Below, in pieces: positions 5,257 through 57,711 of a DNA stretch of 64,000 nucleotides; within the stretch, counting starts at the first letter, position 1, and every line of letters begins with the position of its first letter. The notes under the pieces were generated by a model. The model was not told the origin of the DNA. It did no database searches and worked only from the letters and a program-made list of their open reading frames with translations. Position numbers and translations under genes: made by a program. The stretch spans positions 1 through 64,000 of IMG/VR virus record IMGVR_UViG_3300032236_001850; one strand, written 5' to 3'.

Positions 5257-5940
5257 ATGAAATATATTTCTATAGATGTGGAAACCAGTGGGTTAGATCC
5301 AGAATCAAATCAAGTTTTATCAATAGGAGCGGTAATTGAGGACACAAATAACCCTTTGCCCTTTGAAGAATGTCCAAAATTTCATGGTGCAATCAAGCAC
5401 GAGGATATAACTGGATCACTCTTTGCAATAAATCTAAATCGTGAGCTGATAGAGACTATAGTTTCTTATCAGACATGTAACAACGACGACGAGAGGAAAG
5501 ACGTCGAGAAAGCATCAGGAATGAAGTTTTATCATAAGGATGATATAGTTGAAGCTTTTTATCATTTTCTTTATCTTAATGGTATGGTTAATGTTGATCC
5601 CGATATGAACCTTCTGGAGAGAGTGATGAAACTAAATGACGATGGGAAATCTGTTCCTGTACTTACCTCCAGAATAAAACCCACCCACATAACAGTGGCT
5701 GGTAAGAATTTTGCTACCTTTGATAAACATTTTCTGGAGAGATTACCTAGATGGAAACAGGTAATTAGAATCAAACAAAGAATACTAGATCCTGCCATTT
5801 TGTATATTGATTGGAAAAATGATACTAGTCTTCCTTCACTGGGACAATGTAAAGAAAGAGCAGGAATTCACGGTATCGTGACTCACAATGCCTTGGAGGA
5901 CGCATGGGATGTTGTTGAATTATTAAGAAAAAAATACTAA
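5257..5940 (+). CDS. DEDDh 3'-5' exonuclease (DnaQ-like)
   Basis: IDVETSG, GKNFATFD, HNALEDA motifs. Confidence 0.85.
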   Translation: MKYISIDVETSGLDPESNQVLSIGAVIEDTNNPLPFEECPKFHGAIKHEDITGSLFAINLNRELIETIVSYQTCNNDDERKDVEKASGMKFYHKDDIVEAFYHFLYLNGMVNVDPDMNLLERVMKLNDDGKSVPVLTSRIKPTHITVAGKNFATFDKHFLERLPRWKQVIRIKQRILDPAILYIDWKNDTSLPSLGQCKERAGIHGIVTHNALEDAWDVVELLRKKY

Positions 5941-23258: not shown

Positions 23259-23726
23259 ATGGATAAAGATCTAGCTGAAGCGGAAGCAAGAGTTCTAAAT
23301 TATATAAGAACAACCAAGGAATATTCTGAAATGAATTTCCAGGATAATAACAGTAAAATATGGGTTGCCCATAATTCGCTGATTGCCGCTGCCAAAATAT
23401 ACATCATCGACAATTATAAATTGATTGACGATTACACTGATCTTGATCTTATATTGAGAAGTGGAGCAACAGGCGGGAGGTTTTATTTTGGGCCAAAAAG
23501 AAACAGGGAGGTTTCTAGATCAAAGGAGTTAACCAGAATTTTAAAAGAACTGGATAACCAAACAATAGTTATAGAAAGCTTCGATGAAGCTATCTATGAC
23601 TGGACAGATGGGGATTTTTCAGTGGTGTTCAATGGTGAATCATACAATTGGATAGACGATGATTCAGTTATAAGTATAGCGTCTTACATAGAAAAAAAAT
23701 TAGAGGAAAATGAAATACAATATTGA
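23259..23726 (+). CDS. Hypothetical protein
   Basis: Start reassigned to MDKDLAE. Confidence 0.7.
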   Translation: MDKDLAEAEARVLNYIRTTKEYSEMNFQDNNSKIWVAHNSLIAAAKIYIIDNYKLIDDYTDLDLILRSGATGGRFYFGPKRNREVSRSKELTRILKELDNQTIVIESFDEAIYDWTDGDFSVVFNGESYNWIDDDSVISIASYIEKKLEENEIQY

Positions 23727-24828
23727 GGAAGTTAACGAATATGTGGCTAAGGGATTGGTTGATAAATGTGAGCATAAAGAACTCCCGATAGCAATCTATA
23801 AATATTCACGTAATTGTCAGTTCGAATGGATCTGGGATAACATCACGATGAATATGAGAGGTACCGTTCTCGATGAGAATGGAAACCTTATAGCCCGTAC
23901 ATTTCCTAAGTTTTTCAATATTGACGAGGGGAACATACCAAATTTACCATTTGAAGTTTTCGAAAAACTTGATGGTTCACTTGGTGTCCTATTCAACTAT
24001 GAGGGAGAATGGCATCTGGCAACACAAGGTTCATTCTATTCTGATATTGCTATTTATGCACAGGAGATATTGAAACGAAACGAAACTTATAAGGATGTGT
24101 TCTCTGAGAAATTTACTTTCCTTTTTGAAATCATATACCCAAAGAATCGAATAGTTTGTTCATATGGTGATGATGAGAAATTGGTGCTTCTTGCTGCTTT
24201 CAATACTAAATCAGGTAGAGAGGTTCCTTATCAGGAATTAAAGGACGTTGCGGAAAGAACTGGATTTGAATGTGCTAAAAGATATGATGGGATCAAGGAT
24301 CTTAAAAAGATAAAATCACTAATCGGTGATAATCAGGAGGGATTTGTTATAAGATTCTCTGATGGAACTAGAGTAAAAGCAAAGGGGGAGGAATATGTAA
24401 GGCTTCATGGGGTTCTGACATCGTTCTCCAACTTAGATATCTGGAGATGCTTAAAAGAGGGAAGCGATTATAGATCTTTAATGGTTGATGTTCCTGATGA
24501 ATATGATGCATGGGTTACAAACATTGAACAGGATCTCCAATCTAATTTTAATTTTATAGAGGCAACGGTAAAGGCCGAATATAAATTATTAGTAAAGAAA
24601 CTTAAAAGTCAAATCCCGACGGAGGAGGAAAGACAAGATCGAAACTCACCAGTACTTAAGGCATACAATAAGGAATTCTTTGAGCTTGTGGAAGGAAACA
24701 GATTAGCTGGGTATTTATTAGATCATCACAGAAATAAGGACTATTCAGGATCAATCTGGAATCAAATAAGGCCGGATTACGAAAAACCATTTTGGACAGA
24801 TTACTCATTAAAAAGAAATAAACCATGA
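23710..24828 (+). CDS. RNA ligase, T4 Rnl1-like
   Basis: Motif I EKLDGSLG, FEIIYPKNRIV, EGFVIRF, RVKAK. Confidence 0.88.
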   Translation: MKYNIEEVNEYVAKGLVDKCEHKELPIAIYKYSRNCQFEWIWDNITMNMRGTVLDENGNLIARTFPKFFNIDEGNIPNLPFEVFEKLDGSLGVLFNYEGEWHLATQGSFYSDIAIYAQEILKRNETYKDVFSEKFTFLFEIIYPKNRIVCSYGDDEKLVLLAAFNTKSGREVPYQELKDVAERTGFECAKRYDGIKDLKKIKSLIGDNQEGFVIRFSDGTRVKAKGEEYVRLHGVLTSFSNLDIWRCLKEGSDYRSLMVDVPDEYDAWVTNIEQDLQSNFNFIEATVKAEYKLLVKKLKSQIPTEEERQDRNSPVLKAYNKEFFELVEGNRLAGYLLDHHRNKDYSGSIWNQIRPDYEKPFWTDYSLKRNKP

Positions 24829-25347: not shown

Positions 25348-25748
25348 TGATTAAAGAACAAGAAATAGAAAAAGCAAAATTAGAGTTTGCAATAGAGCAA
25401 TTGGAGCAACATATAGTTCATCCAATGAAACCCGGTTATAGAAGACATGACGTCATGGATAAGATCAAGGAATTAAAATCCCAGCTTAAGTCCATTACTG
25501 ATTCCGAGAGTAAAGAAATCATCATATTAATCCAAACCGATGGATCTTGCGAGATGGCAAGGGTATCAATGGATGGTGTTGGTGTGATGGAAGGCAACTT
25601 TTGGGATTTTCACCCAGGGTGTCACAATATAAATGAATATGGTGACTTTGGAAACTGTGATGATTTAGCAATAAAGATATTGCTTAAGCTCACAAAGGAA
25701 GGTAAAAAAGCCAAGATAATTAAGGAAAAATATAAATACGAATACTAA
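25347..25748 (+). CDS. Hypothetical protein
   Basis: TAATG-coupled. Confidence 0.7.
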   Translation: MIKEQEIEKAKLEFAIEQLEQHIVHPMKPGYRRHDVMDKIKELKSQLKSITDSESKEIIILIQTDGSCEMARVSMDGVGVMEGNFWDFHPGCHNINEYGDFGNCDDLAIKILLKLTKEGKKAKIIKEKYKYEY

Positions 25749-26395
25749 TGAAAATAATATTACAAGGACATCAGAAGATCTTCTGGACATCTGATTCCCA
25801 CTATAACCACTCCAACATATGTAGTGCTACTAGCGAATGGCCTGCAGGAAGAGGAACTCGGAAATTCAATTCATTGAATGAAATGAACGACCGACTAGTA
25901 TACGAGATCAATGCAATGGTAGGAGAGAATGATATACTAATCCACCTGGGAGATTGGAGCTTTGGTGGCATAGAATCTATCTCGGAGTTTCGAAATAGAA
26001 TTAACTGTAAAAACGTACACATCTTCTTAGGGAACCACGATCATCACATAAAAAACAACAGGGATAATGTGAGAGATCTTTTTGCTAGTGTCAATAAGCT
26101 GGAAACTATAGAGCTTCGAGTTCCACAAGGAAAGGAAACTAAGAAATACACATTTGAATGCTGTCATTTCCCAATAGCTAGTTGGGATGGACTTGGCAAG
26201 GGATATTCACATTTGCATGGACACGTTCATCTTCCTGGTAACTTAAAGATACACAAGGGAAGAGCAATGGATGTTGGTGCAGACGGAAACAACTACAAGC
26301 CATATTCATTGAATGAAATATTGAAGGCATTGGAGGGAAGACCTAAGATGCACTTATCATTACCAAAGGATCATCACACTGAGGAGGGGGACTAA
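25748..26395 (+). CDS. Calcineurin-like metallophosphoesterase
   Basis: SDSHYNH, HLGDWS, GNHD, HGHVH. Confidence 0.9.
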   Translation: MKIILQGHQKIFWTSDSHYNHSNICSATSEWPAGRGTRKFNSLNEMNDRLVYEINAMVGENDILIHLGDWSFGGIESISEFRNRINCKNVHIFLGNHDHHIKNNRDNVRDLFASVNKLETIELRVPQGKETKKYTFECCHFPIASWDGLGKGYSHLHGHVHLPGNLKIHKGRAMDVGADGNNYKPYSLNEILKALEGRPKMHLSLPKDHHTEEGD

Positions 26396-28347: not shown

Positions 28348-29025
28348 ATGGATTACGGAGCAGAATTTAGAAAGTACGCACAGAGCGAAAAGGGAATTAG
28401 TTCATTAACAATGGACTATCATGCAAAACACGTCGAAGCATCAATGACTCCAATGATTCTCGAAGAAAGAGAATTAAGGGTAACACAGATGACAGTTTTT
28501 GACAGATTAATGATGGACAGAATCCTTTGGGTTGCTGGACCGGTTAACGATAGAATGTCAACAATAGTTCAAGCACAACTTATGTTCTTGGATTCTGTGG
28601 AAGTGAAGGACATCATCATGCACATTGATTCACCTGGTGGATCTGTTAAAAGTGGTTTAAGTATGGTTGATGTTATGGACTACATCAAATCTGATATCTC
28701 AACGATCAACACAGGTATGGCTGCTTCAATGGGATCAGTGCTTTTAGGTGCTGGTACAAAAGGTAAAAGATCATCGTTAAGATTTAGTAAAGTGATGCTT
28801 CACCAATCCAGCGGTGGTTTCAGAGGAAACATCCAAGATGCTGAAATTGACTGGAAAGAGTGGCAAGAGGTAAACTCTATCCTATTTGATTTGCTTGGTG
28901 ATTTCTGTGACAAAGATCCAGAACAAGTTAAGAAAGACTCACAAAGAGATTTCTGGATGAGTGCTCAGGAAGCAGTTGATTATGGAATCATTGACGAGAT
29001 CGTAAAAGGTAAAAGAGTAAGATAA
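28348..29025 (+). CDS. clpP: ATP-dependent Clp protease proteolytic subunit
   Basis: VFDRLMMDRI, QAQLMFL, IDSPGGSV, GMAASMGS, MLHQ. Confidence 0.95.
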   Translation: MDYGAEFRKYAQSEKGISSLTMDYHAKHVEASMTPMILEERELRVTQMTVFDRLMMDRILWVAGPVNDRMSTIVQAQLMFLDSVEVKDIIMHIDSPGGSVKSGLSMVDVMDYIKSDISTINTGMAASMGSVLLGAGTKGKRSSLRFSKVMLHQSSGGFRGNIQDAEIDWKEWQEVNSILFDLLGDFCDKDPEQVKKDSQRDFWMSAQEAVDYGIIDEIVKGKRVR

Positions 29026-42613: not shown

Positions 42614-42829
42614 ATGAAAGCAAAAATAACAAAAAGTATGGCTTTAGCTATCGAGATAGGAATAGCAGAGCTTGAAAATAGCGGAATCTGGGAGGATGGT
42701 CTTTCCAAAAAGGAAATAAAGAAAACTTACAAGGGAATAGAGGAGCTTGAAATGCTTCTTAGTAAAATAGAACAAAACAAAAAGGAAAAAGAAAATGGAA
42801 AGAAAACTAGCGAGCATTCGGAAGATTAG
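42614..42829 (+). CDS. Hypothetical protein
   Basis: Intact ORF. Confidence 0.6.
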   Translation: MKAKITKSMALAIEIGIAELENSGIWEDGLSKKEIKKTYKGIEELEMLLSKIEQNKKEKENGKKTSEHSED

Positions 42830-43934
42830 TGATCTCCAGCCAATCGAGGGTGCTGACCTTATAGAATTGGCTATCGTTGATGGCTGGAAGGTTGTGGTTG
42901 CCAAAGAGGTTGGTCACAAGATTGGTAATTTTGTTATCTACTGTGAGGTTGATTCATTCCTTCCAATTAGAGAGGAATTTGAATTTCTAAGAAAAAGCTC
43001 ATATAGAAAGATGGCTGACGGGAATGAGGGATTCAGACTTAAAACCATAAAGCTTAGAGGTCAGGTTTCTCAGGGACTTATTCTACCGCTTTCCATATTG
43101 GAAGGCGAGGAAGAGGATGAAAAATTAGGGTACCTACAAACTCCTGATGGACCAATATACCAATTAGGTCCTTACGAGGGAGCTCTTGTTATTGAGGAAG
43201 GTGCTGATGTTACGGCTAAGCTTGGTATCATTAAATGGGATCCACCAATGCCTGCTGAATTAGCTGGTGTTGCAAAAGGAAACTTCCCAAGCTTCATCCC
43301 TAAAACTGACGAGGAGAGAATCCAAAATCTTGCAAAGAATTACGAGAAAATGAGATCCCAAAAGTACTATGTAACTGAAAAGCTAGATGGTTCATCTTCA
43401 ACATTCTACGTTTACAATGGAGAATTTGGGGTTTGTTCTAGAAATCTAGATCTTTGCCGTCCTGAACCTTTCGTTGAAGGCATGGTTATGTGCGAGGATG
43501 GGATAGAAAGACCTAAAAGGGAGAACACTTTCTGGAAAGTTGCAAGAGAACTTGGAATTGAGGAGAATATGCTTGATCTCAGTGGAAATCTTGCAATCCA
43601 GGGGGAAATCATAGGCGAGGGTGTGCAAGGTAATCCCTACAAGATCAAAGGTCAAACTCTTAGAGTTTACAATGCTTTTGATATTGATGCCCAAGAATAT
43701 TTAACTTTTGAAAAATTCAAGTTGACCGTTAAGGTTCTTGGATTGGAAACTGTGCCTATTATCGATGAGGATTTCACTTTACCAGAAACAATAGACGAGC
43801 TTCTAAAGTTTGCTGAGGGTAAATCAGTGCTTAATGCGTCTGCAGAGAGGGAAGGTTATGTGATTAGAAGTTTTGACATGACAACAAGCTTTAAAGTTAT
43901 ATCAAACAATTTCTTACTTAAGGAGAAAGAGTAA
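42795..43934 (+). CDS. RNA ligase, DRB0094/Rnl2-like with N-terminal OB-like domain
   Basis: RKLASIRKI..IEGAD.IE, FIPKTDEERIQN, TEKLDGSS, QGEIIG, EGYV, FKVISN. Confidence 0.9.
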   Translation: MERKLASIRKISDLQPIEGADLIELAIVDGWKVVVAKEVGHKIGNFVIYCEVDSFLPIREEFEFLRKSSYRKMADGNEGFRLKTIKLRGQVSQGLILPLSILEGEEEDEKLGYLQTPDGPIYQLGPYEGALVIEEGADVTAKLGIIKWDPPMPAELAGVAKGNFPSFIPKTDEERIQNLAKNYEKMRSQKYYVTEKLDGSSSTFYVYNGEFGVCSRNLDLCRPEPFVEGMVMCEDGIERPKRENTFWKVARELGIEENMLDLSGNLAIQGEIIGEGVQGNPYKIKGQTLRVYNAFDIDAQEYLTFEKFKLTVKVLGLETVPIIDEDFTLPETIDELLKFAEGKSVLNASAEREGYVIRSFDMTTSFKVISNNFLLKEKE

Positions 43935-44614: not shown

Positions 44615-45145
44615 ATGAAAAAACTTTTATTTATCGCAATTGCTTTAATCGCAATGCAAACGAGCTTTGCTCAAACATTTTCTAAAGGTGATACTTTTGT
44701 AGAGGGCACCGTTAAATTCGTATCTTCAAATGATACAAAAACTTTCGACTTCAATCCAACTGTTGGTCATTTTGTGACAGACAAAGTTGCTGTTGGGATT
44801 TCTGTTAACACAGAAAACACAAAAACTGCAGGTGTAACTACAACTGACTCTTTTGGTTTTGGTGTATTTGCTAGATGCTACTTTTTAAGAATTGGTGAGC
44901 ATTTCAACGTTCATTCGCAATTAGGCGTGAATAGTGATAAAGCAGGTGATACAAAAACTTTAAGTGCTAATTTAGGTTTAGGTGCTAACTATTTTGTTAC
45001 CAAAAACTTATCTTTAACTTTATCTGTTGCAGACTTAGCTTCTTTCAAATCTGTTAAAGATGGAGATAGCACAACTACTATTGGATTCAGTGGGGTTACA
45101 AATCCATTCGCAACACCTACATTTGGTGTGAACTACAGATTCTAA
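44615..45145 (+). CDS. Outer-membrane beta-barrel protein (Bacteroidetes type)
   Basis: Signal peptide ..SFAQ; alternating beta-strands; terminal FGVNYRF. Confidence 0.8.
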   Translation: MKKLLFIAIALIAMQTSFAQTFSKGDTFVEGTVKFVSSNDTKTFDFNPTVGHFVTDKVAVGISVNTENTKTAGVTTTDSFGFGVFARCYFLRIGEHFNVHSQLGVNSDKAGDTKTLSANLGLGANYFVTKNLSLTLSVADLASFKSVKDGDSTTTIGFSGVTNPFATPTFGVNYRF

Positions 45146-48092: not shown

Positions 48093-48830
48093 ATGCCAAA
48101 ATTATACAAAGTAGGAGGTACAGTTCGGGATGCTATCCTTGGGATTGATTCCAAAGATATAGATTTCACTTTCGTGCTGGATGACTTAAACCAGACGGTC
48201 GAAGAGGGATTCCAAAAGATGGATGACTGGATGACGGAGAATGGATTTGAAATATTTCTCAGAGTTCCCGAAATGTACACCATTCGTGCTAGGTTTCCTA
48301 AAGGAGATCCAAACGAGAAACTGGTAGCAGATTTCGTGATGTCAAGAAAAGAAGTTGGCTACATTGAAGGAACAAGAAGACCTAAGCTTGAACTTGGAAC
48401 GCTGGAGGATGATTTAATTCGTAGAGACTTCACTATCAATGCGATGGCAGTGGACGAGGATGGGGAAATCATAGATCTGTTTGGTGGACAAGATGACCTA
48501 AGAATGGAGATATTAAGAACACCCAGGGATCCAATGATAACTCTAATGGATGATCCGCTAAGGCTTCTTCGTGCTATGAGATTTTGCATAACTAAGGATC
48601 TTGTTATCCATGACGACATCTGGGATGCTATGAAGCAACCAGCTCTGATTGATAAACTGAATCTCACAGTCAGCGGAGAGAGAATCAGAGAGGAGATTGA
48701 GAAGATGATGAAATTCGATACTGTTACATCAATGAGACTAATAACAGATTGTGACGATCACATGGAGGGAAAATTATTAAGAACACTATTCAAAGCAGGG
48801 CTTTGGCTAAAACCAACATTCAAACAATGA
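48093..48830 (+). CDS. tRNA nucleotidyltransferase / poly(A) polymerase family (class II head domain)
   Basis: VGGTVRD..DIDF, EDDLIRRDFTINAMA, DDPLRLLRAMRF, SGERIREE. Confidence 0.9.
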   Translation: MPKLYKVGGTVRDAILGIDSKDIDFTFVLDDLNQTVEEGFQKMDDWMTENGFEIFLRVPEMYTIRARFPKGDPNEKLVADFVMSRKEVGYIEGTRRPKLELGTLEDDLIRRDFTINAMAVDEDGEIIDLFGGQDDLRMEILRTPRDPMITLMDDPLRLLRAMRFCITKDLVIHDDIWDAMKQPALIDKLNLTVSGERIREEIEKMMKFDTVTSMRLITDCDDHMEGKLLRTLFKAGLWLKPTFKQ

Positions 48831-49513
48831 GAAATATAATCATTTTAATTTTATGTGCAACCACAATGTCTGCACAGTTTAAGAAAACATTCAATGAAAC
48901 AGTTACTGGTTCATATAACACAATAAAAACTGGAGAGCAGATCATAGCTTCAGTGAATTCTTTGAATCATGCGGACTATGGAAAGTTTGAGTTTGACCTA
49001 AATCCAATTTATAATGTGACTTACGTGGCTGGGAAAATGACAGCCAATGAGTTCATGAATAAAACTAATATTGGATTTAAGCACAACACCCTGTCCTTTT
49101 TCTATCTTAATCAATATGATACTTCCCTTATAAGAAGCATAGATTGGGACGAGTGGAATGGTCTTGGTGCGGGAAAGAAATTTAAGATAAGCGATAAGTT
49201 TACCACATCAGTTTCATACTGTTTCGAACAGCAACTTAGGAAGTATGTTGGTTCCGATTTAGAAACCATATACAGGAATTCATTCAGGCTGAAATCTTCA
49301 CTGAATTACGAGACAGTGGCTTTCTCAATAGAGTATTATTACCAACCAGCAATAAACACCAATGACGTCAATGTTTTTGGCACATCCAAGATAACAATTC
49401 TACCAAATAAACCAGTTAGCTTTGTTGTACAGAACACGTACAATTATATGAGCACTGACGCTGTTAAAACAATACAGAACACAACATTTGGAGTAAATGT
49501 AAATATAAAATGA
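48827..49513 (+). CDS. Outer-membrane beta-barrel protein (DUF481-like)
   Basis: Signal peptide MRNIIILILCATTMSAQ; GLGAG, RNSFRLK, YYYQP, terminal FGVNVNIK. Confidence 0.6.
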   Translation: MRNIIILILCATTMSAQFKKTFNETVTGSYNTIKTGEQIIASVNSLNHADYGKFEFDLNPIYNVTYVAGKMTANEFMNKTNIGFKHNTLSFFYLNQYDTSLIRSIDWDEWNGLGAGKKFKISDKFTTSVSYCFEQQLRKYVGSDLETIYRNSFRLKSSLNYETVAFSIEYYYQPAINTNDVNVFGTSKITILPNKPVSFVVQNTYNYMSTDAVKTIQNTTFGVNVNIK

Positions 49514-49992
49514 AAATGAATCCACTGGTAGTTGCAGCATTCCCTGGATCTGGGAAATCCTATTATAGTGAAGAATTGGATCAGTCCGGATCTTCAGTAT
49601 CAGTTGAGGTTTCTGATCTGCTATTAAAATATTACAGCTTCAATACAGAAAGAGTTAATTTAGAAATTAGTGAGATCTACCAGAAATATTCATTATTTAT
49701 AGATGAGAAAATAAATGATGGCTACTCTATAATTTTTATCCCTGCATTCTATGATGATGTATTGGAACTGATGAGATTCGAAAAGTACCGGATCGTTTTA
49801 GTTTACCCGAAACAGGATCTCCTTAATGAGTACCTGACAAGATACAAATCCCGAGGAAGTGACGGGATCTATATAGAAAAGATCTCGAGAGAATGGAACG
49901 ATTCCCTTGATAAATTAAAATCAATAGCTGGATGCAGACATATAGAGTTGAATAGCATGCAATACATATCGGATATAATAAAAGATCTTTAA
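49510..49992 (+). CDS. P-loop kinase-like protein
   Basis: VVAAFPGSGKS. Confidence 0.7.
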   Translation: MKMNPLVVAAFPGSGKSYYSEELDQSGSSVSVEVSDLLLKYYSFNTERVNLEISEIYQKYSLFIDEKINDGYSIIFIPAFYDDVLELMRFEKYRIVLVYPKQDLLNEYLTRYKSRGSDGIYIEKISREWNDSLDKLKSIAGCRHIELNSMQYISDIIKDL

Positions 49993-49994
49993 AA

Positions 49995-50912
49995 ATGAAA
50001 AGAAATCTAAAAAAAATAATCATGAACTCAGATCTCCCAATGACCAGCGGTCCGTTACTCAGATTTGATCAGGAGACAGCTGATAAGATAACAGAGAGTG
50101 GGAAAGAAACCATCAGGGAAGCCATCAAGGTTGTCAGTGCAGGAATATATGGGGAGGTAGGAGACAAATCAGATTTTAAGAAGATGCTGGAGTCATGGAA
50201 CCCAGTTGATTCGCTTGGATCCGGAGAGCCAGAGCAATTAACACAGGAGGAGATCGACGAGAGACAGGCTTATATAGACGACACCAAAAATGGATACTCT
50301 GAAGCTGCCGTTCATAAGATACTCAAGGATCTAAAGATTGACGAACCTGTTCTCAATATCTATAGATACGGAAGCCGAATCTATGGAACTGCTGATCAGA
50401 ATTCAGATCACGATTACATCATAGTTACCAGAGGAGCTATGCTTAAGAGTGGTGCTTTTAAACAGAATGCCATCTCCAGCGAAAACCGTAACATCCAAGG
50501 AATCCTTTATTCCAGAAGCGGATTTACGGATGCTATCAACAACTACGATATTAGTGCATTGGAATGCCTATCATTACATCCTGATGATGTGGTTAAAAGC
50601 ACTTGGCCTTTCAAGGTTCAAAAATGGGACAATAAGGTGATGACAAAAAAGATCATCTCGAAAGTTTCAGCATCCTGGCACACTGCTGACATGCAGGCTA
50701 AAGATGGATTCAAAGATCGTGCTAAGAAGGGTATTTTTCATGCACTTAGAATTCTGCACTTTGCATTACAGTTGAAGGAGAATCAGAAGATTGATGACTT
50801 TGGATGTGTTAACTATATCTGGGAGGATTTTAAATTGATTCCAGATGAGGAGTTTGATACCAGAGACTATATCAAGGAGAGGGATGAACTAATGGAAGAA
50901 TTAAGATCATGA
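49995..50912 (+). CDS. Pol-beta-superfamily nucleotidyltransferase with helical C-terminal domain
   Basis: YGSRIYGTADQNSDHD (GS..DxD). Confidence 0.8.
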   Translation: MKRNLKKIIMNSDLPMTSGPLLRFDQETADKITESGKETIREAIKVVSAGIYGEVGDKSDFKKMLESWNPVDSLGSGEPEQLTQEEIDERQAYIDDTKNGYSEAAVHKILKDLKIDEPVLNIYRYGSRIYGTADQNSDHDYIIVTRGAMLKSGAFKQNAISSENRNIQGILYSRSGFTDAINNYDISALECLSLHPDDVVKSTWPFKVQKWDNKVMTKKIISKVSASWHTADMQAKDGFKDRAKKGIFHALRILHFALQLKENQKIDDFGCVNYIWEDFKLIPDEEFDTRDYIKERDELMEELRS

Positions 50913-51145
50913 TAAAAATAGACGAGAAGAAACTTGACAGATATTACCAGGAATACCTAAATAGTATTGCGGAAAATCCAGAGATTAGTCACAATCTAAA
51001 GAGTCTTGCACCAGTAAATTGGTATAGTACTAGTTTGGTATCGTGTGTCTTTGCATCTATATTGGAAAGTAATTTTCACGACATAGCAACACTCGAAGAA
51101 GTTAAATTTGAAAAATTAGGAAATGAAAATAAAAGCGATTTATAA
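50909..51145 (+). CDS. Hypothetical protein
   Basis: Overlapping gene train. Confidence 0.6.
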   Translation: MIKIDEKKLDRYYQEYLNSIAENPEISHNLKSLAPVNWYSTSLVSCVFASILESNFHDIATLEEVKFEKLGNENKSDL

Positions 51146-51374
51146 AAGAAATTTGAAGATGCCGGAGGGCAAGGTGGCTTCACAAGTTGCACATGCTGTT
51201 AAGAATCTTGGGATCACTCCGATTGATTCGATTATAGTGGTTCTTTGTGTTTCGGATAAGAAGTTTGAAGAGCTTGTTGCGGAACACCCAAATTGCTATG
51301 TACAAACGGATCTAGGTTTAACCTGCGTTGAAAGTGGTACACGTACTGCTGCAGCATGGATAGAGGAGGAATAA
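51123..51374 (+). CDS. pth2: Peptidyl-tRNA hydrolase, Pth2 family (minimal)
   Basis: LKMPEGKVASQVAHA and QTDLGLT.VESGTRTA match Pth2 GK.AAQ..HA and D.G.T...GT.T. Confidence 0.8.
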   Translation: MKIKAIYKRNLKMPEGKVASQVAHAVKNLGITPIDSIIVVLCVSDKKFEELVAEHPNCYVQTDLGLTCVESGTRTAAAWIEEE

Positions 51375-51820
51375 TGGTAAACAAAGTCAACATAAACAAC
51401 AGGAAAGCAAAGTTCGATTTCGAGTTCATTAGAACTCTAACTGCTGGTATGCAGCTGATGGGATCGGAAGTAAAGGCTATCCGAGATGGCAGAGTTTCCT
51501 TTGTGGATTCCTACTGTTACTTCAACGGCAAAGAACTTTTTCTAAAGAATCTAAATATAACTCCAATATCATCTACATATTCTCACGAACCCAACAGGGA
51601 GAGAAGGTTGCTTCTTAATAGAAGTGAACTTAGAAAACTTCAGAATGATATGGACAGAGGAATGACTATAGTTCCTTTTAGAATTTTTACAAATGAGAAG
51701 GGCTTGATCAAACTAGATATCGCACTTGCTAAGGGAAAGAAGAGTTACGACAAAAAAGAAAAAATAAAGGAGGCAGATATAAAAAGGGATACTAAAAGAT
51801 TCATTGCTGGAGATATATAG
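51374..51820 (+). CDS. smpB: SsrA-binding protein
   Basis: NRKAKFDF, AGMQLMGSEVKAIR, RERRLLLNRSE, IALAKGKK..DKK; TAATG-coupled to pth2. Confidence 0.95.
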   Translation: MVNKVNINNRKAKFDFEFIRTLTAGMQLMGSEVKAIRDGRVSFVDSYCYFNGKELFLKNLNITPISSTYSHEPNRERRLLLNRSELRKLQNDMDRGMTIVPFRIFTNEKGLIKLDIALAKGKKSYDKKEKIKEADIKRDTKRFIAGDI

Positions 51821-51838
51821 GTATAAAATCATACCTAT
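51812..51838 (+). promoter_or_regulatory. GATATATA motif plus initiation-region hairpin upstream of homing endonuclease
   Basis: GATATATA at 51812-51819; hairpin ATAGGTAT-AAAATC-ATACCTAT (51817-51838) ending 1 nt before ATG 51840. Confidence 0.7.
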
Positions 51839-51839
51839 T

Positions 51840-52874
51840 ATGAGACACAGTAAAAAATATCTGATTAATTATTTAATAGAAAATTATAACAAAAAAAGTA
51901 AATCCGAGATAATTAGTGAACTCGACCTTTCGTGGACATATCTGCAAAAAATAGCATCTTTAAATGGTATAAAAAGAGAATTTTGTGAAAATAAAAACGG
52001 AGGTAAATATTCAATATTAACAAATTATGATAATATTATAAGTTGTTATTGGTTAGGATTTATGTTAGCTGATGGTAATATAAGCAAAAAAAATAATATG
52101 ATGCTCAATTTAGCAATATGTGATAAAGATCATATACTCAAAATAGAAACTCATGTTGGAAAAACCTGCGTGTATTATAAAAAAGACAATATAATAACAA
52201 TTGTTTTGAATGATTCTGTTACATTTAAAAAAATAGCATCAGATTTCAATTGGAAAACTAATAAAACAAAAAACCCACCCGTTCTACCGGGATCAATGAG
52301 CCCTGATTGTATATTTTCAATGATCATCGGATTCATTGATGGTGATGGATGTATTGATGAAAGGTATGGACTGAAAGTTAAATGTGATGGATCGTGGCAA
52401 GACATGCTTAACTATTTCCATTTAATATTAACAGGTAATTCTAAAAAATATCAAATTAACAATAATGGTTATTCGGTATTTCGAGTGGGTGACATGGTTA
52501 AACTAAAGGATATAAAGAAAAAAATTTTAGACCTTGGTATTCCAGCTATGGATAGGAAGTGGGATAAAATAGATATTAATAGGATATACAAATCGGAGAA
52601 AAAATCTATTATTTCGGAGATGCTAAATAACGGGGATAACATGGAGTCGATATTAGAAAAAACAGGATTTAGCAAAACGTTATATTATTCAGTTGCAAAC
52701 AAGGAAGGAATAAATGTAAGAAAAAATAAAATATCCGATAATCAATCCGCATCGATAGTAACAATGTATAATAACGGAATTACTACCAGGGAGATATCTA
52801 GCTCACTCAAATTAAGTATATCAACAATACACAGACACATTAAAAAATACAAAGAAGCTAAAAGAAGTTTATAA
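51840..52874 (+). mobile_element. Free-standing double-motif LAGLIDADG homing endonuclease with C-terminal HTH-like region
   Basis: YWLGFMLADGNI and MIIGFIDGDGCI; HTH-like ITTREISSSLKLSISTIHRHI; more AT-rich than neighbours. Confidence 0.85.
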
Positions 52875-53341
52875 TGGAAAGAGTAGAAATGCGTGACAAA
52901 TCGCACAGGTCGATTGTACAGAAACAAGAAACACCACAATCGGAAAAGCAGAAGGTTAAAACAGAAAAGAAAATCAAATATGATCAGAATCTTAAGAATT
53001 CGATCATGAAAATGTTTAAGGATAGTAGATACTGTTCCATGATGATTAGCTATTCGTATAGATACTCTGATGAGATTGTGATTGAAGACGTGAAAGCAAC
53101 AATTCTGAAGGATGACTATGATGCCTTTATCAAGGAGATAAAGGCATGTAATTTTGATAAGACATCAACATTATCGGTTATCAACAAATATTCACCAGTA
53201 AACAGGGAGAATAGATCAACAGGATCAACAAATATCGGTTGGGTGACACCAATAGAAAGATTAGGTCCATCGTCGGGTTTAATAAAGATTGGTAAGTCTT
53301 CTAGAAATCAAGATGACGATGCATTTAATAAATTTTTCTAA
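52874..53341 (+). CDS. Hypothetical protein
   Basis: TAATG-coupled. Confidence 0.7.
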   Translation: MERVEMRDKSHRSIVQKQETPQSEKQKVKTEKKIKYDQNLKNSIMKMFKDSRYCSMMISYSYRYSDEIVIEDVKATILKDDYDAFIKEIKACNFDKTSTLSVINKYSPVNRENRSTGSTNIGWVTPIERLGPSSGLIKIGKSSRNQDDDAFNKFF

Positions 53342-53613
53342 TGAAAGAAGGAATAGTTTTAATAGCGATCCCCATATTGGTCCTAGGACTCATTATAGCT
53401 CTCCATACGAAGTCCGATAAGTATGTGGGTACTGTAGTAAAGGTTAGCTCGTGGGATGGAGCAGCGAGCTTAAAAACAAAGAATAAGAGAGGTCAAGACA
53501 CCATCATTGAGGTTAAGCCTCGAAGATTTGAAAGATTCACCGAGGGGCAGGTAATTACAGCTTGGATTGGTGGAGATTTAATAGGAGACATAGCAACAAC
53601 AAATCCACAATAA
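53341..53613 (+). CDS. Membrane-anchored OB-like protein
   Basis: N-terminal TM helix then beta-strands. Confidence 0.65.
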   Translation: MKEGIVLIAIPILVLGLIIALHTKSDKYVGTVVKVSSWDGAASLKTKNKRGQDTIIEVKPRRFERFTEGQVITAWIGGDLIGDIATTNPQ

Positions 53614-56654: not shown

Positions 56655-56661
56655 TAAGATT

Positions 56662-56720
56662 TGGTACGTAGCTTAGTGGTAGAGCTTTACAGCGGGAGTT
56701 CGATTCTTTCCGTGCCGGCA
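56662..56720 (+). ncRNA. tRNA-like RNA lacking an anticodon arm (mimic or tRNA pseudogene)
   Basis: Acceptor TGGTACG/CGTGCCG; D arm GCTT-AGTGGTA-GAGC; T arm GGGAG-TTCGATT-CTTTC; only an 8-nt linker TTTACAGC between them. Confidence 0.65.
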
Positions 56721-56888
56721 AAGCAGTTTTTATGATGCATCTCCATCGACAGAGAACGTTGTTTTAGATTTAAAAATAATGTTAATGTGGTCGGGTAGTT
56801 TAAAAGTTTTCCTAGCCTTAAGGAAAAGTACGGATGGGTTTGCAGAAGACAGTTTCCGAGCCTAGTGGAAAAGTCGGTATATAAACAG

Positions 56889-56916
56889 GGGAATCGGTCG
56901 GCTTTAACCGATTCCC
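56889..56916 (+). other. Perfect 10-bp hairpin preceding the second tRNA-like RNA
   Basis: GGGAATCGGT-CGGCTTTA-ACCGATTCCC. Confidence 0.8.
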
Positions 56917-56920
56917 AACA

Positions 56921-57048
56921 GGGGGAATAGACCAGGCGGTATGGTACGTCTCTAGCTTATATTATAGATAGAATCTATGACGTCTTCACACTAAGACGAA
57001 GCTTAGATGATTCAAGTGTCACAGGTTCGATTCCTGTTTCCCTCACTA
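56921..57048 (+). ncRNA. tRNA-like RNA with anticodon arm replaced by a branched domain
   Basis: Acceptor GGGGGAA/TTCCCTC + ACTA; D-like ACCA-GGCGGTA-TGGT; T arm ACAGG-TTCGATT-CCTGT; inner hairpins ATAGAT/ATCTAT and CGTCTT/AAGACG. Confidence 0.7.
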
Positions 57049-57049
57049 A

Positions 57050-57400
57050 CCGCGTCACTGTAAGCTGCAGTGATAACTGGACACGAACCAAGGTGGTTCC
57101 GCGGATCACCAATAAAATCGTCTGAGGCAGAGTCCAAGTCCAGGGTTAGGATATTGAGTCTACTACATAACGGCACGTGAAATTAATACCGACATGTACT
57201 GTCTGGCAGGTCAGGCTAGGCTCATTGGAACATGTTCTTCGTGGTGGATAGAACGGTATTTTATAGGATGGACGCATTGGTAATAGTTAGGTAAGGAGAG
57301 AACTGCAGTGGGCTGCTGCACTACACCTCGAGAAAAATCGCAAGATAAAACTGCCAATTTAGATGGGAGAACTAAGCCATCCAATAGAATACCAAACACA
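57050..57400 (+). ncRNA. Candidate structured ncRNA (unassigned)
   Basis: GC-richer ORF-poor region with several nested helices. Confidence 0.45.
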
Positions 57401-57420
57401 GAAGAAAATTATTATTGTTA

Positions 57421-57452
57421 TTTTTTTAATCCGAATTATTACCATATATTTG
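57421..57452 (+). promoter_or_regulatory. Conserved 32-bp promoter (copy 10), inside a perfect 15-bp inverted repeat
   Basis: TTTTTTTAATCCG-N11-TATATTTG; arms 57428-57442 / 57454-57468. Confidence 0.85.
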
Positions 57453-57489
57453 TGTAATAATTCGGATTTTTAATTTTAAATAAAAACTT

Positions 57490-57711
57490 ATGACACCAGA
57501 AAAATTAGACGAAGCTAAGGAATTCAAAAGAAACTCAGGTATAATGGCAATAGTGCTTTGGGTATTCGTAGGCTTCCTTGCATACATGGCAGATCCAAAA
57601 ACTATAGAAGTTGCAAGCTTTGTTGGTATTGGAGCTATTGCTTTAACCTACATATACTTCAGAATGGGTTCGTTAATTAAAGAATATGAAAAGATAATCA
57701 ATGGAAAATAA
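57490..57711 (+). CDS. Two-TM small membrane protein
   Basis: Two hydrophobic helices. Confidence 0.75.
   Translation: MTPEKLDEAKEFKRNSGIMAIVLWVFVGFLAYMADPKTIEVASFVGIGAIALTYIYFRMGSLIKEYEKIINGK

Follow-up and report, generated by a model that had tools for sequence, protein, structure and literature searches.

The subject of this analysis is a gene pair in the first 64,000 nucleotides (bases 1-64000, hereafter the window) of the IMG/VR virus record IMGVR_UViG_3300032236_001850, a 434,509-bp record that has direct terminal repeats and is rated complete. The pair consists of smpB, which encodes the SsrA-binding protein SmpB, and, immediately upstream of it, an 83-aa open reading frame (ORF) for a protein of the peptidyl-tRNA hydrolase 2 (Pth2) type, hereafter mini-Pth2. 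The host of the phage is probably a member of the Bacteroidota. An earlier reading made from the letters of the window (hereafter the sequence-only reading) had taken the pair for the rescue module of a phage with no transfer-messenger RNA (tmRNA) in view. We found a tmRNA gene at 400,049-400,510 of the same genome, and the supposed lack of a tmRNA was thus an artefact of the window. SmpB is not an orphan, since the phage's own tmRNA lies elsewhere in the genome; the story of an 'orphan SmpB' is thereby settled, the partner RNA being encoded beyond the window. We consider it probable that SmpB serves this tmRNA, that mini-Pth2 is a separate tRNA-recycling hydrolase, and that the adjacency of the two genes is incidental. 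The features on which the argument turns are the following.

51123..51374, + strand: mini-Pth2, 83 aa, predicted four strands and two helices, K17/D63/T67 conserved, phrog_31188 (profiles, AlphaFold2 (AF2) model, Foldseek)
51360..51376, + strand: junction, a GGAGG Shine-Dalgarno-like motif within the end of the mini-Pth2 ORF, then a TAATG stop/start overlap
51374..51820, + strand: smpB, a full-length SsrA-binding protein of 148 aa with a basic C-terminal tail (KGKKSYDKK...) (Pfam, NCBIfam, alignments)
Genome 400,049-400,510, + strand: tmRNA gene (Infernal RF00023, covariation, tag frame, RNA contigs)

Identification of the phage tmRNA gene

The claim of the sequence-only reading that the 64 kb contain no tmRNA holds for the window itself, in which ARAGORN called 0 genes and Rfam at the gathering threshold gave one tRNA-like match only. 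The search of the whole genome for ssrA, for which that reading had asked, gave a different picture. ARAGORN called 31 tRNAs at 210-229 kb and no tmRNA in the 434,509 bp. With the Rfam model RF00023, Infernal matched 400,049-400,513 of the + strand to the whole model (1-374), the E-value being 6.7e-16 and the score 41.4 bits. An ordinary phage tmRNA elsewhere in the genome, which the sequence-only reading had itself named as the observation that would speak against it, was therefore found at 400 kb. We rejected the negative ARAGORN result as proof of absence, since Infernal found the locus; among the 12 distinct sequences of this tmRNA clade, ARAGORN recognises only one, to which it assigns a shortened tag.

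The tmRNA locus occupies an inter-ORF gap of about 550 nt, and a terminator (a 9-bp hairpin and a T-run) lies 10 nt past its 3' end. The acceptor stem has 7 bp, in which 5' GGGCCAA pairs with 3' UUGGUCC, and is followed by the discriminator A. The stem includes G3:U70, the alanine identity pair. The T-arm, GGUUCGAAUCC, reads GAGGG-UUCGAAU-CCCUC.

Homologues of the tmRNA were fetched with a conserved 27-mer, which gave 21 viral contigs (L108-L128) and 12 distinct complete sequences. Relatives within the clade score 59-79 bits with RF00023, and two members of the clade, that of the present genome included, fall under the Rfam gathering threshold. Seven versions of the acceptor stem occur among the 12 tmRNAs (GGGCCAA/UUGGUCC, GGGCCUA/UAGGUCC, GGGUCGG/CCGAUCC, GGGGCUG/CAGCUCC or CAGUUCC, GGGUCUG/CAGAUCC, GGGUCAU/AUGAUCC and GGGGACG/CGUCUCC); all of them pair and all keep G3:U70. 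RNAalifold on 13 sequences gave 67 pairs, with compensatory changes in 29 of them, including pairs in the T stem, helix 2 and a PK1-type (pseudoknot 1-type) stem.

The tag frame starts at a GGC, which the Infernal alignment places at the resume codon. It stays open for exactly 25 codons in each of the 12 sequences and ends in AA-stop, and there are stops in both other frames. Two of the sequences carry whole-codon indels in the tag, and in both the length is restored. The tag of the present genome is GKNNVWETINAFGTPVAKTELAIAA-stop (genome 400,144-400,221), and the positions invariant in 10 sequences are G..NVW..IN.FG.P........AA.

Evidence at the RNA level came from 4 metatranscriptome runs, in whose assemblies contigs of 435-457 nt occur. 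These span L001:1510/1527-1954/1963, which is the predicted tmRNA, and contain no flanking coding sequence. They are about 97% identical to it, and their tag variant is that of the relative L120. In one run the 5' end of the tmRNA contig abuts an Illumina adapter, and the contig of one run is 719 nt long with an unrelated tail. The contig of run X19 extends 255 nt beyond the 3' end of the tmRNA (L001:1963 onward), unlike the present genome; the extension could be a chimeric assembly or reflect another genomic context in a relative. The phage tmRNA thus exists as a discrete RNA in a relative of about 97% identity.

SmpB and its association with tmRNA

The identification of the downstream gene as smpB, already made in the sequence-only reading, stood up well, the protein scoring above the equivalog cut-offs. 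It gave 159.3 bits against Pfam PF01668 (cut-off 27; profile positions 2-141 of 143), 162.4 bits against the NCBIfam equivalog NF003843 (cut-off 130) and 156.6 bits against TIGR00086 (cut-off 119.1). It aligns over nearly its full length with solved SmpB structures, the tail included, up to residue 143. When 23 phage and cellular sequences are aligned, the hinge Gly and the tail KGKK..DK(R/K)..IK are conserved, and G121, K122, K127, I131 and K132 are invariant. The nearest named cellular SmpBs are those of Bacteroidia and Sphingobacteriaceae, with 55-59% identity. Matches of 60-95% identity sit on contigs of up to 403 kb, and at least 444 stretches in IMG/VR encode a relative. Judged by these profiles and alignments, the protein is a canonical SmpB, with the phage tmRNA as its predicted partner.

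The homologues end either in ...SI (144 aa) or in ...(A/S)GDI (148 aa), and the SmpB of the window is of the 148-aa type. An insertion is found at the 3' end of the gene:

51804..53341, + strand: LAGLIDADG/HTH homing-endonuclease-like ORF (51804-52874) and a 155-aa ORF, inserted at the 3' end of smpB (Pfam, PHROGs, relatives)

The homing-endonuclease-like ORF has a match in the relative L011 only, and no match to the 155-aa ORF was found in any relative compared. In the relatives L009, L010 and L102, a homologue of the ORF 53341-53613 directly follows smpB.

To see which gene accompanies which, co-occurrence was examined in 22 other SmpB-bearing large phage records, taken as sets of 5 and 17. 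A full-length tmRNA match was present in 5/5 and 14/17 of them (19/22 in total), and in 10/10 of the records rated at least 90% complete. Matches to the mini-Pth2 profile were confined to 2/5 and 1-2/17 (about 4 of 22). A search for SmpB loci with the single sequence returned 3 close relatives, and an alignment-based repeat was used for the wider set. By tblastn against 81 SmpB loci, mini-Pth2 was present only in L009, L010 and L011, the SmpBs of which are 91-92% identical to that of the window; at the 77 other SmpB loci it was not found within +/-4 kb of SmpB. In G003, mini-Pth2 lies about 20 kb from smpB. An uncultured phage of 634,780 bp (LR745206.1) carries mini-Pth2 at about 10.5 kb and SmpB at 332,958-333,383 (177 bits), and the RF00023 search gave no full-length tmRNA match in it; this phage may have a more divergent tmRNA or may be a true SmpB-only phage.

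The reverse comparison started from mini-Pth2. Cultured phages that carry it are Vibrio phage ICP1, Aeromonas phages, Shewanella phage 1/4 and Pseudaeromonas phage KLEP7; the gene is annotated as hypothetical in ICP1 and as peptidyl-tRNA hydrolase in Shewanella phage 1/4 and KLEP7. Neither SmpB nor tmRNA was found in the four cultured phages checked (ICP1, Aeromonas, Shewanella, Pseudaeromonas). In the SmpB-bearing records above, SmpB travels with tmRNA and not with mini-Pth2. More distant members of the mini-Pth2 family lie in phage-type arrays of small ORFs. One of them, P0163, lies 3 kb from a protein with a weak match to the TROVE (Ro60-like RNA quality-control) domain (L131 8396-9772, a Logan contig), the surroundings of which are also a phage-like small-ORF array.

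The junction of the two genes

The 83-aa ORF and the TAATG overlap described in the sequence-only reading are both present: the ORF runs from 51123 to 51374, and its stop TAA at 51372-51374 shares the final A with the ATG at 51374. The longest-ORF start of smpB would be the ATG at 51356. Homologues, however, start at the position of the ATG at 51374 (MVNK/MKKP/MGKS), and the GGAGG motif is located just upstream of it; for these reasons we take ATG 51374 as the real start.

The emphasis that had been placed on translational coupling did not hold up. In the + strand run 34986-56654, neighbouring genes overlap in 22/41 pairs, and overlap or lie at most 5 nt apart in 29/41. TAATG-type overlaps are therefore generic in this operon, and the overlap between mini-Pth2 and smpB is not distinctive in such tight packing. 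Since few SmpB-bearing phages have mini-Pth2, the cultured phages with mini-Pth2 have neither SmpB nor tmRNA, and overlaps are usual here, the adjacency of the two genes is lineage-specific and probably incidental. The placement of mini-Pth2 upstream of smpB is recent in this lineage; it gives co-expression and is no mark of an obligate two-protein machine.

A compact Pth2 fold

The identity of mini-Pth2 as a Pth2, proposed from the letters and the translations, was borne out by the family profile, the AF2 model and Foldseek. With the single sequence, Pfam PF01981 gave 25.5 bits (cut-off 23) over residues 6-27 only, and PHROGs gave a full-length match to phrog_31188, a family without assigned function. 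An exhaustive search yielded 134 clusters at 50% identity, mostly of about 80-100 aa. A profile built from 56 members matches every solved Pth2 structure (1rlk, 1wn2, 1xty, 1rzw/3erj, 2zv3, 1q7s and 24bt) over profile positions 2-84, with E-values from 6e-13 to 2e-9. The AF2 model has a pLDDT (predicted local distance difference test) of 94.9 and consists of four strands and two helices. The only significant matches of this model in the Protein Data Bank (PDB) by Foldseek were Pth2 structures, with TM (template modelling) scores of 0.7-0.8. The assignment of mini-Pth2 as a Pth2-fold protein, weak by single-sequence hidden Markov models, is firm by these three approaches as a prediction.

Canonical Pth2 has 116-120 aa and consists of a four-stranded sheet and four helices (PMC11202043). 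Relative to it, mini-Pth2 is shorter by about 13 residues following helix 1 and by the final 18 or so. K17 and D63 do not vary among the 56 members, and T67, Q21 and H24 hardly do. In the alignment with 1xty, K17, D63 and T67 stand opposite K18, D86 and T90 of the Pth2 of S. solfataricus, which we take to be the active-site residues mapped by Fromant et al. (2005).

These comparisons suggest that mini-Pth2 is a stand-alone enzyme of a phage-wide family of about 80-95 aa, and that the probable function of phrog_31188 is that of a minimal Pth2-type peptidyl-tRNA hydrolase. Such a function would extend to Vibrio phage ICP1, a well-studied phage in which the gene is uncharacterised. If active, the 83-residue protein would define the minimal catalytic core of the enzyme family.

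Proposed roles in infected cells

The explanation that we prefer can be put as a sequence of steps, in which every biochemical activity is inferred, as is the gain for the phage. The alanyl-tRNA synthetase of the host would charge the phage tmRNA. Phage SmpB would fill the position of the missing anticodon arm and bring the tmRNA to ribosomes that have stalled on an mRNA that is broken or has no stop codon. The growing peptide would receive the tag ending in ...AIAA and would then be degraded by Clp or Lon of the host, with the phage ClpP as a possible further protease, and the ribosome would be set free for phage mRNA. Off the ribosome, mini-Pth2 would cleave peptidyl-tRNA or N-blocked aminoacyl-tRNA and thus refill the tRNA pool. 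SmpB/tmRNA and mini-Pth2 may in this way uphold translation capacity during infection, beside tRNA healing, sealing and CCA repair. Functionally, mini-Pth2 belongs with the neighbouring tRNA-repair genes, which encode two RNA ligases, a CCA-adding-type enzyme, a kinase-like protein and a nucleotidyltransferase. The theme of the sequence-only reading, rescue and recycling in translation, is broadly retained; ClpP, RNA ligases and a CCA-adding-type enzyme are encoded in the surroundings. Its view of the Pth2-SmpB pair as a module is not retained, for the pair is not conserved as one.

Several facts weigh against the preferred explanation. On the side of the RNA, ARAGORN did not call the tmRNA, and its 41.4 bits are below the Rfam gathering score of 47. 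The downstream region aligns poorly to RF00023, with low posterior probabilities, and the pseudoknots PK1-PK4 are candidates only. A hairpin is predicted within the tag region of the RNA and could partly explain the conservation of the tag; the variable tag sites by codon position (12/8/15) are mildly coding-like and weakly informative. The RNA contigs stem from the relative of about 97% identity, not from the exact genome, and RNA libraries can hold DNA carry-over, although carry-over is disfavoured since the contigs are sharply gene-length. On the side of the protein, mini-Pth2 scores far below the NCBIfam equivalog cut-offs for Pth2 (TIGR00283 / NF003314), with 27.3 against 126 for one model and 22.2 against 82 for the other. 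It is without two of the four canonical helices and about 35 residues, so that its hydrolase activity is putative. A complex prediction for SmpB and mini-Pth2 scored 0.00, which is uninformative either way and leaves room for a physical partnership.

Alternative explanations

One possible alternative, which we think unlikely and yet worth serious attention, is that mini-Pth2 acts mainly in counter-defence, by undoing the work of tRNA-directed toxins, and has no relation to trans-translation. It might, for instance, remove the acyl group from the N-acetyl-aminoacyl-tRNA that GNAT toxins of the TacT/AtaT type produce, or it might clear peptidyl-tRNA that remains once tRNA or mRNA has been cleaved. 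The spread of mini-Pth2 over unrelated phages without SmpB or tmRNA, in early-gene-like arrays of small ORFs, would fit such a role, as would its position beside tRNA-repair genes both here and in KLEP7. Detoxification of TacT products by bacterial Pth is known (PMC9241777). Housekeeping recycling of tRNA, however, accounts for the same distribution.

It is also conceivable, and in our judgement doubtful, that mini-Pth2 is a catalytically dead remnant or a protein that binds the 3' end of tRNA. The loss of two helices and of the C-terminal 18 or so residues of Pth2, and the scores far below the equivalog cut-offs, would agree with this. Against it, the K, D and T residues are invariant or nearly so across the 56 diverse members, and the fold prediction is very confident. 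The large size of the family and its uniform length, moreover, argue for selection on a working domain.

Somewhat less probable still is a private, rewired form of trans-translation, in which the 25-aa tag would be more than a generic degron and the co-translated mini-Pth2 would act together with SmpB. The tag would then serve, for example, as a handle for the phage ClpP machinery or for another phage factor, and mini-Pth2 would release, for example, peptidyl-tRNA or peptidyl-tmRNA from split or blocked ribosomes. By a further stretch, a 57-nt tRNA-like RNA downstream of smpB (see below) could be a second ligand of SmpB.

The proposal closest to the sequence-only reading, namely a dedicated, coupled rescue module of Pth2 and SmpB that captures or rewires the tmRNA of the host in a phage without its own, is very improbable and largely refuted. 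In its favour are the TAATG overlap with the shared Shine-Dalgarno-like motif, the adjacency kept in the three closest relatives, a window in which neither ARAGORN nor Rfam finds a tmRNA, and the 634-kb phage that has SmpB and mini-Pth2 and no clear RF00023 match. The genome, however, has its own tmRNA with covariation, a conserved tag and support at the RNA level. SmpB is accompanied by tmRNA in all 10 near-complete relatives and rarely by mini-Pth2, long distances separate the two protein genes in G003 and the 634-kb phage, and overlaps are generic in the operon.

That the match at 400 kb is a decayed or chance tRNA-like sequence and that SmpB uses the tmRNA of the host is hardly credible: the sub-threshold Rfam score and the negative ARAGORN result point that way, and the E-value over the full model, covariation in several helices, the tag frame conserved in 12 sequences, the downstream terminator and gene-length RNA contigs in 4 metatranscriptomes all argue against it.

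Comparison with known systems

Both tmRNA with SmpB in huge phages and PTH2 in jumbo phages are already published. Huge phages with tmRNA and SmpB were reported by Al-Shayeb et al. (2020, PMC7162821), and the present genome resembles them in being that of a phage of more than 200 kb with SmpB, a one-piece tmRNA, about 31 tRNAs and other translation-related genes. That study used ARAGORN, which misses 11/12 of the present tmRNA clade. In comparison with the huge-phage systems, the 25-aa tag of the present clade is conserved and of unusual length. A distance of 349 kb separates smpB from the tmRNA gene here; by coordinate comparison the two are adjacent, within about 1.5 kb, in roughly half of the other phage records.

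Cellular SmpBs of the Bacteroidota share 55-59% identity with the phage protein. Tags of Bacteroidota such as GENNYALAA presumably start at a GGC (Gly) resume codon and end in ...AA, as does the phage tag. The phage tag differs from that of the cellular tmRNA in being about 2.5 times longer and in having a conserved internal motif, and the genes are phage-borne.

PTH2 of jumbo phages was described within RNA repair and ribosome rescue by Iyer et al. (2021, PMC7824862). As in that description, an archaeo-eukaryotic-type Pth2 fold is found in a bacterial phage among RNA ligases and a CCA-adding-type enzyme; the present form differs in having 83 aa and two helices, and it also occurs in phages of about 115-135 kb such as ICP1. 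With the archaeal and eukaryotic Pth2 proteins (PF01981; 1xty, 1rlk, 1wn2, 2zv3, 3erj, 1q7s), mini-Pth2 shares the beta-sheet core and the motifs GK(L/I)AAQ..HA and D-x-G-x-T. It differs from them in being shorter (by the helix-1-following 13 or so and the C-terminal 18 or so residues), in scoring under the equivalog cut-offs and in that its activity is putative.

What is new is the compact 83-aa architecture of Pth2, which reaches into ICP1-like phages; the ARAGORN-invisible tmRNA clade with its conserved 25-aa tag and RNA-level support; and the lineage-specific joining of mini-Pth2 and smpB as an overlapping pair. The tmRNA clade, which occurs on 21 or more viral contigs, is overlooked by ARAGORN and scores at or under the Rfam cut-off. 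Surveys based on these two tools will therefore undercount phage tmRNAs and overcount SmpB-only phages.

Genomic neighbourhood

The genes in the surroundings of the pair that bear on RNA repair, translation or proteolysis, together with the ORF directly upstream, are as follows.

23710..24828, + strand: RNA ligase of the T4 Rnl1 type (Pfam)
25748-26395: metallophosphoesterase
28348..29025, + strand: ClpP protease subunit, to which tmRNA-tagged proteins may be directed
42795..43934, + strand: RNA ligase (PHA02142 OB-fold and RNA_ligase domains)
48093..48830, + strand: PolyA_pol head-domain protein of the class II CCA-adding / tRNA nucleotidyltransferase type
49510..49992, + strand: P-loop kinase-like protein (weak AAA_18 match; phrog_4182)
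49995..50912, + strand: nucleotidyltransferase-domain protein (phrog_388; weak Pfam NTP_transf_2)
50909..51145, + strand: 78-aa ORF without known function, overlapping the start of mini-Pth2 by 23 nt and conserved in close relatives
56662-56718, + strand: 57-nt tRNA-like RNA, some 5 kb downstream of smpB (34.2 bits with the Rfam tRNA model, gathering threshold 29)
56921-57045, + strand: second tRNA-like element, 125 nt (Rfam, 30.8 bits)

In KLEP7, mini-Pth2 lies between Clp protease and CCA-adding enzymes together with a nucleotidyltransferase, and the CCA-type protein of the window is 36% identical to the CCA enzyme near mini-Pth2 in that phage. Genes of the RF-1/ArfB type and the Pth1 type were sought in the phage genome and none was found. 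Pfam searches with 20 further ORFs up- and downstream mostly gave no match.

The two tRNA-like elements lie in a non-coding gap of about 800 nt (56655-57490), which is missing from the closest relatives. The 57-nt RNA has an acceptor stem, a canonical D-arm and a T-arm, and a single nucleotide replaces the anticodon arm. It was missed by ARAGORN. Since position 3:70 is G-C, it has no alanine identity. The RNA is kept in L010 (about 5507-5563), where changes within its acceptor and T stems compensate each other, and is not present in L009 or L011; its minimum free energy folding is unremarkable (z 0.69). In intron mode, ARAGORN reads the 125-nt element as a tRNA-Val(aac) that has a long extra arm and an anticodon loop interrupted by a 35-nt insert.

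Two ORFs of the window, 44615-45145 and 48803-49513, resemble outer-membrane beta-barrel proteins (OMP_b-brl, OprF), both under the Pfam cut-offs, and the N-terminus of the latter is signal-peptide-like. Such beta-barrel-like ORFs are unusual cargo amid a run of RNA-repair genes.

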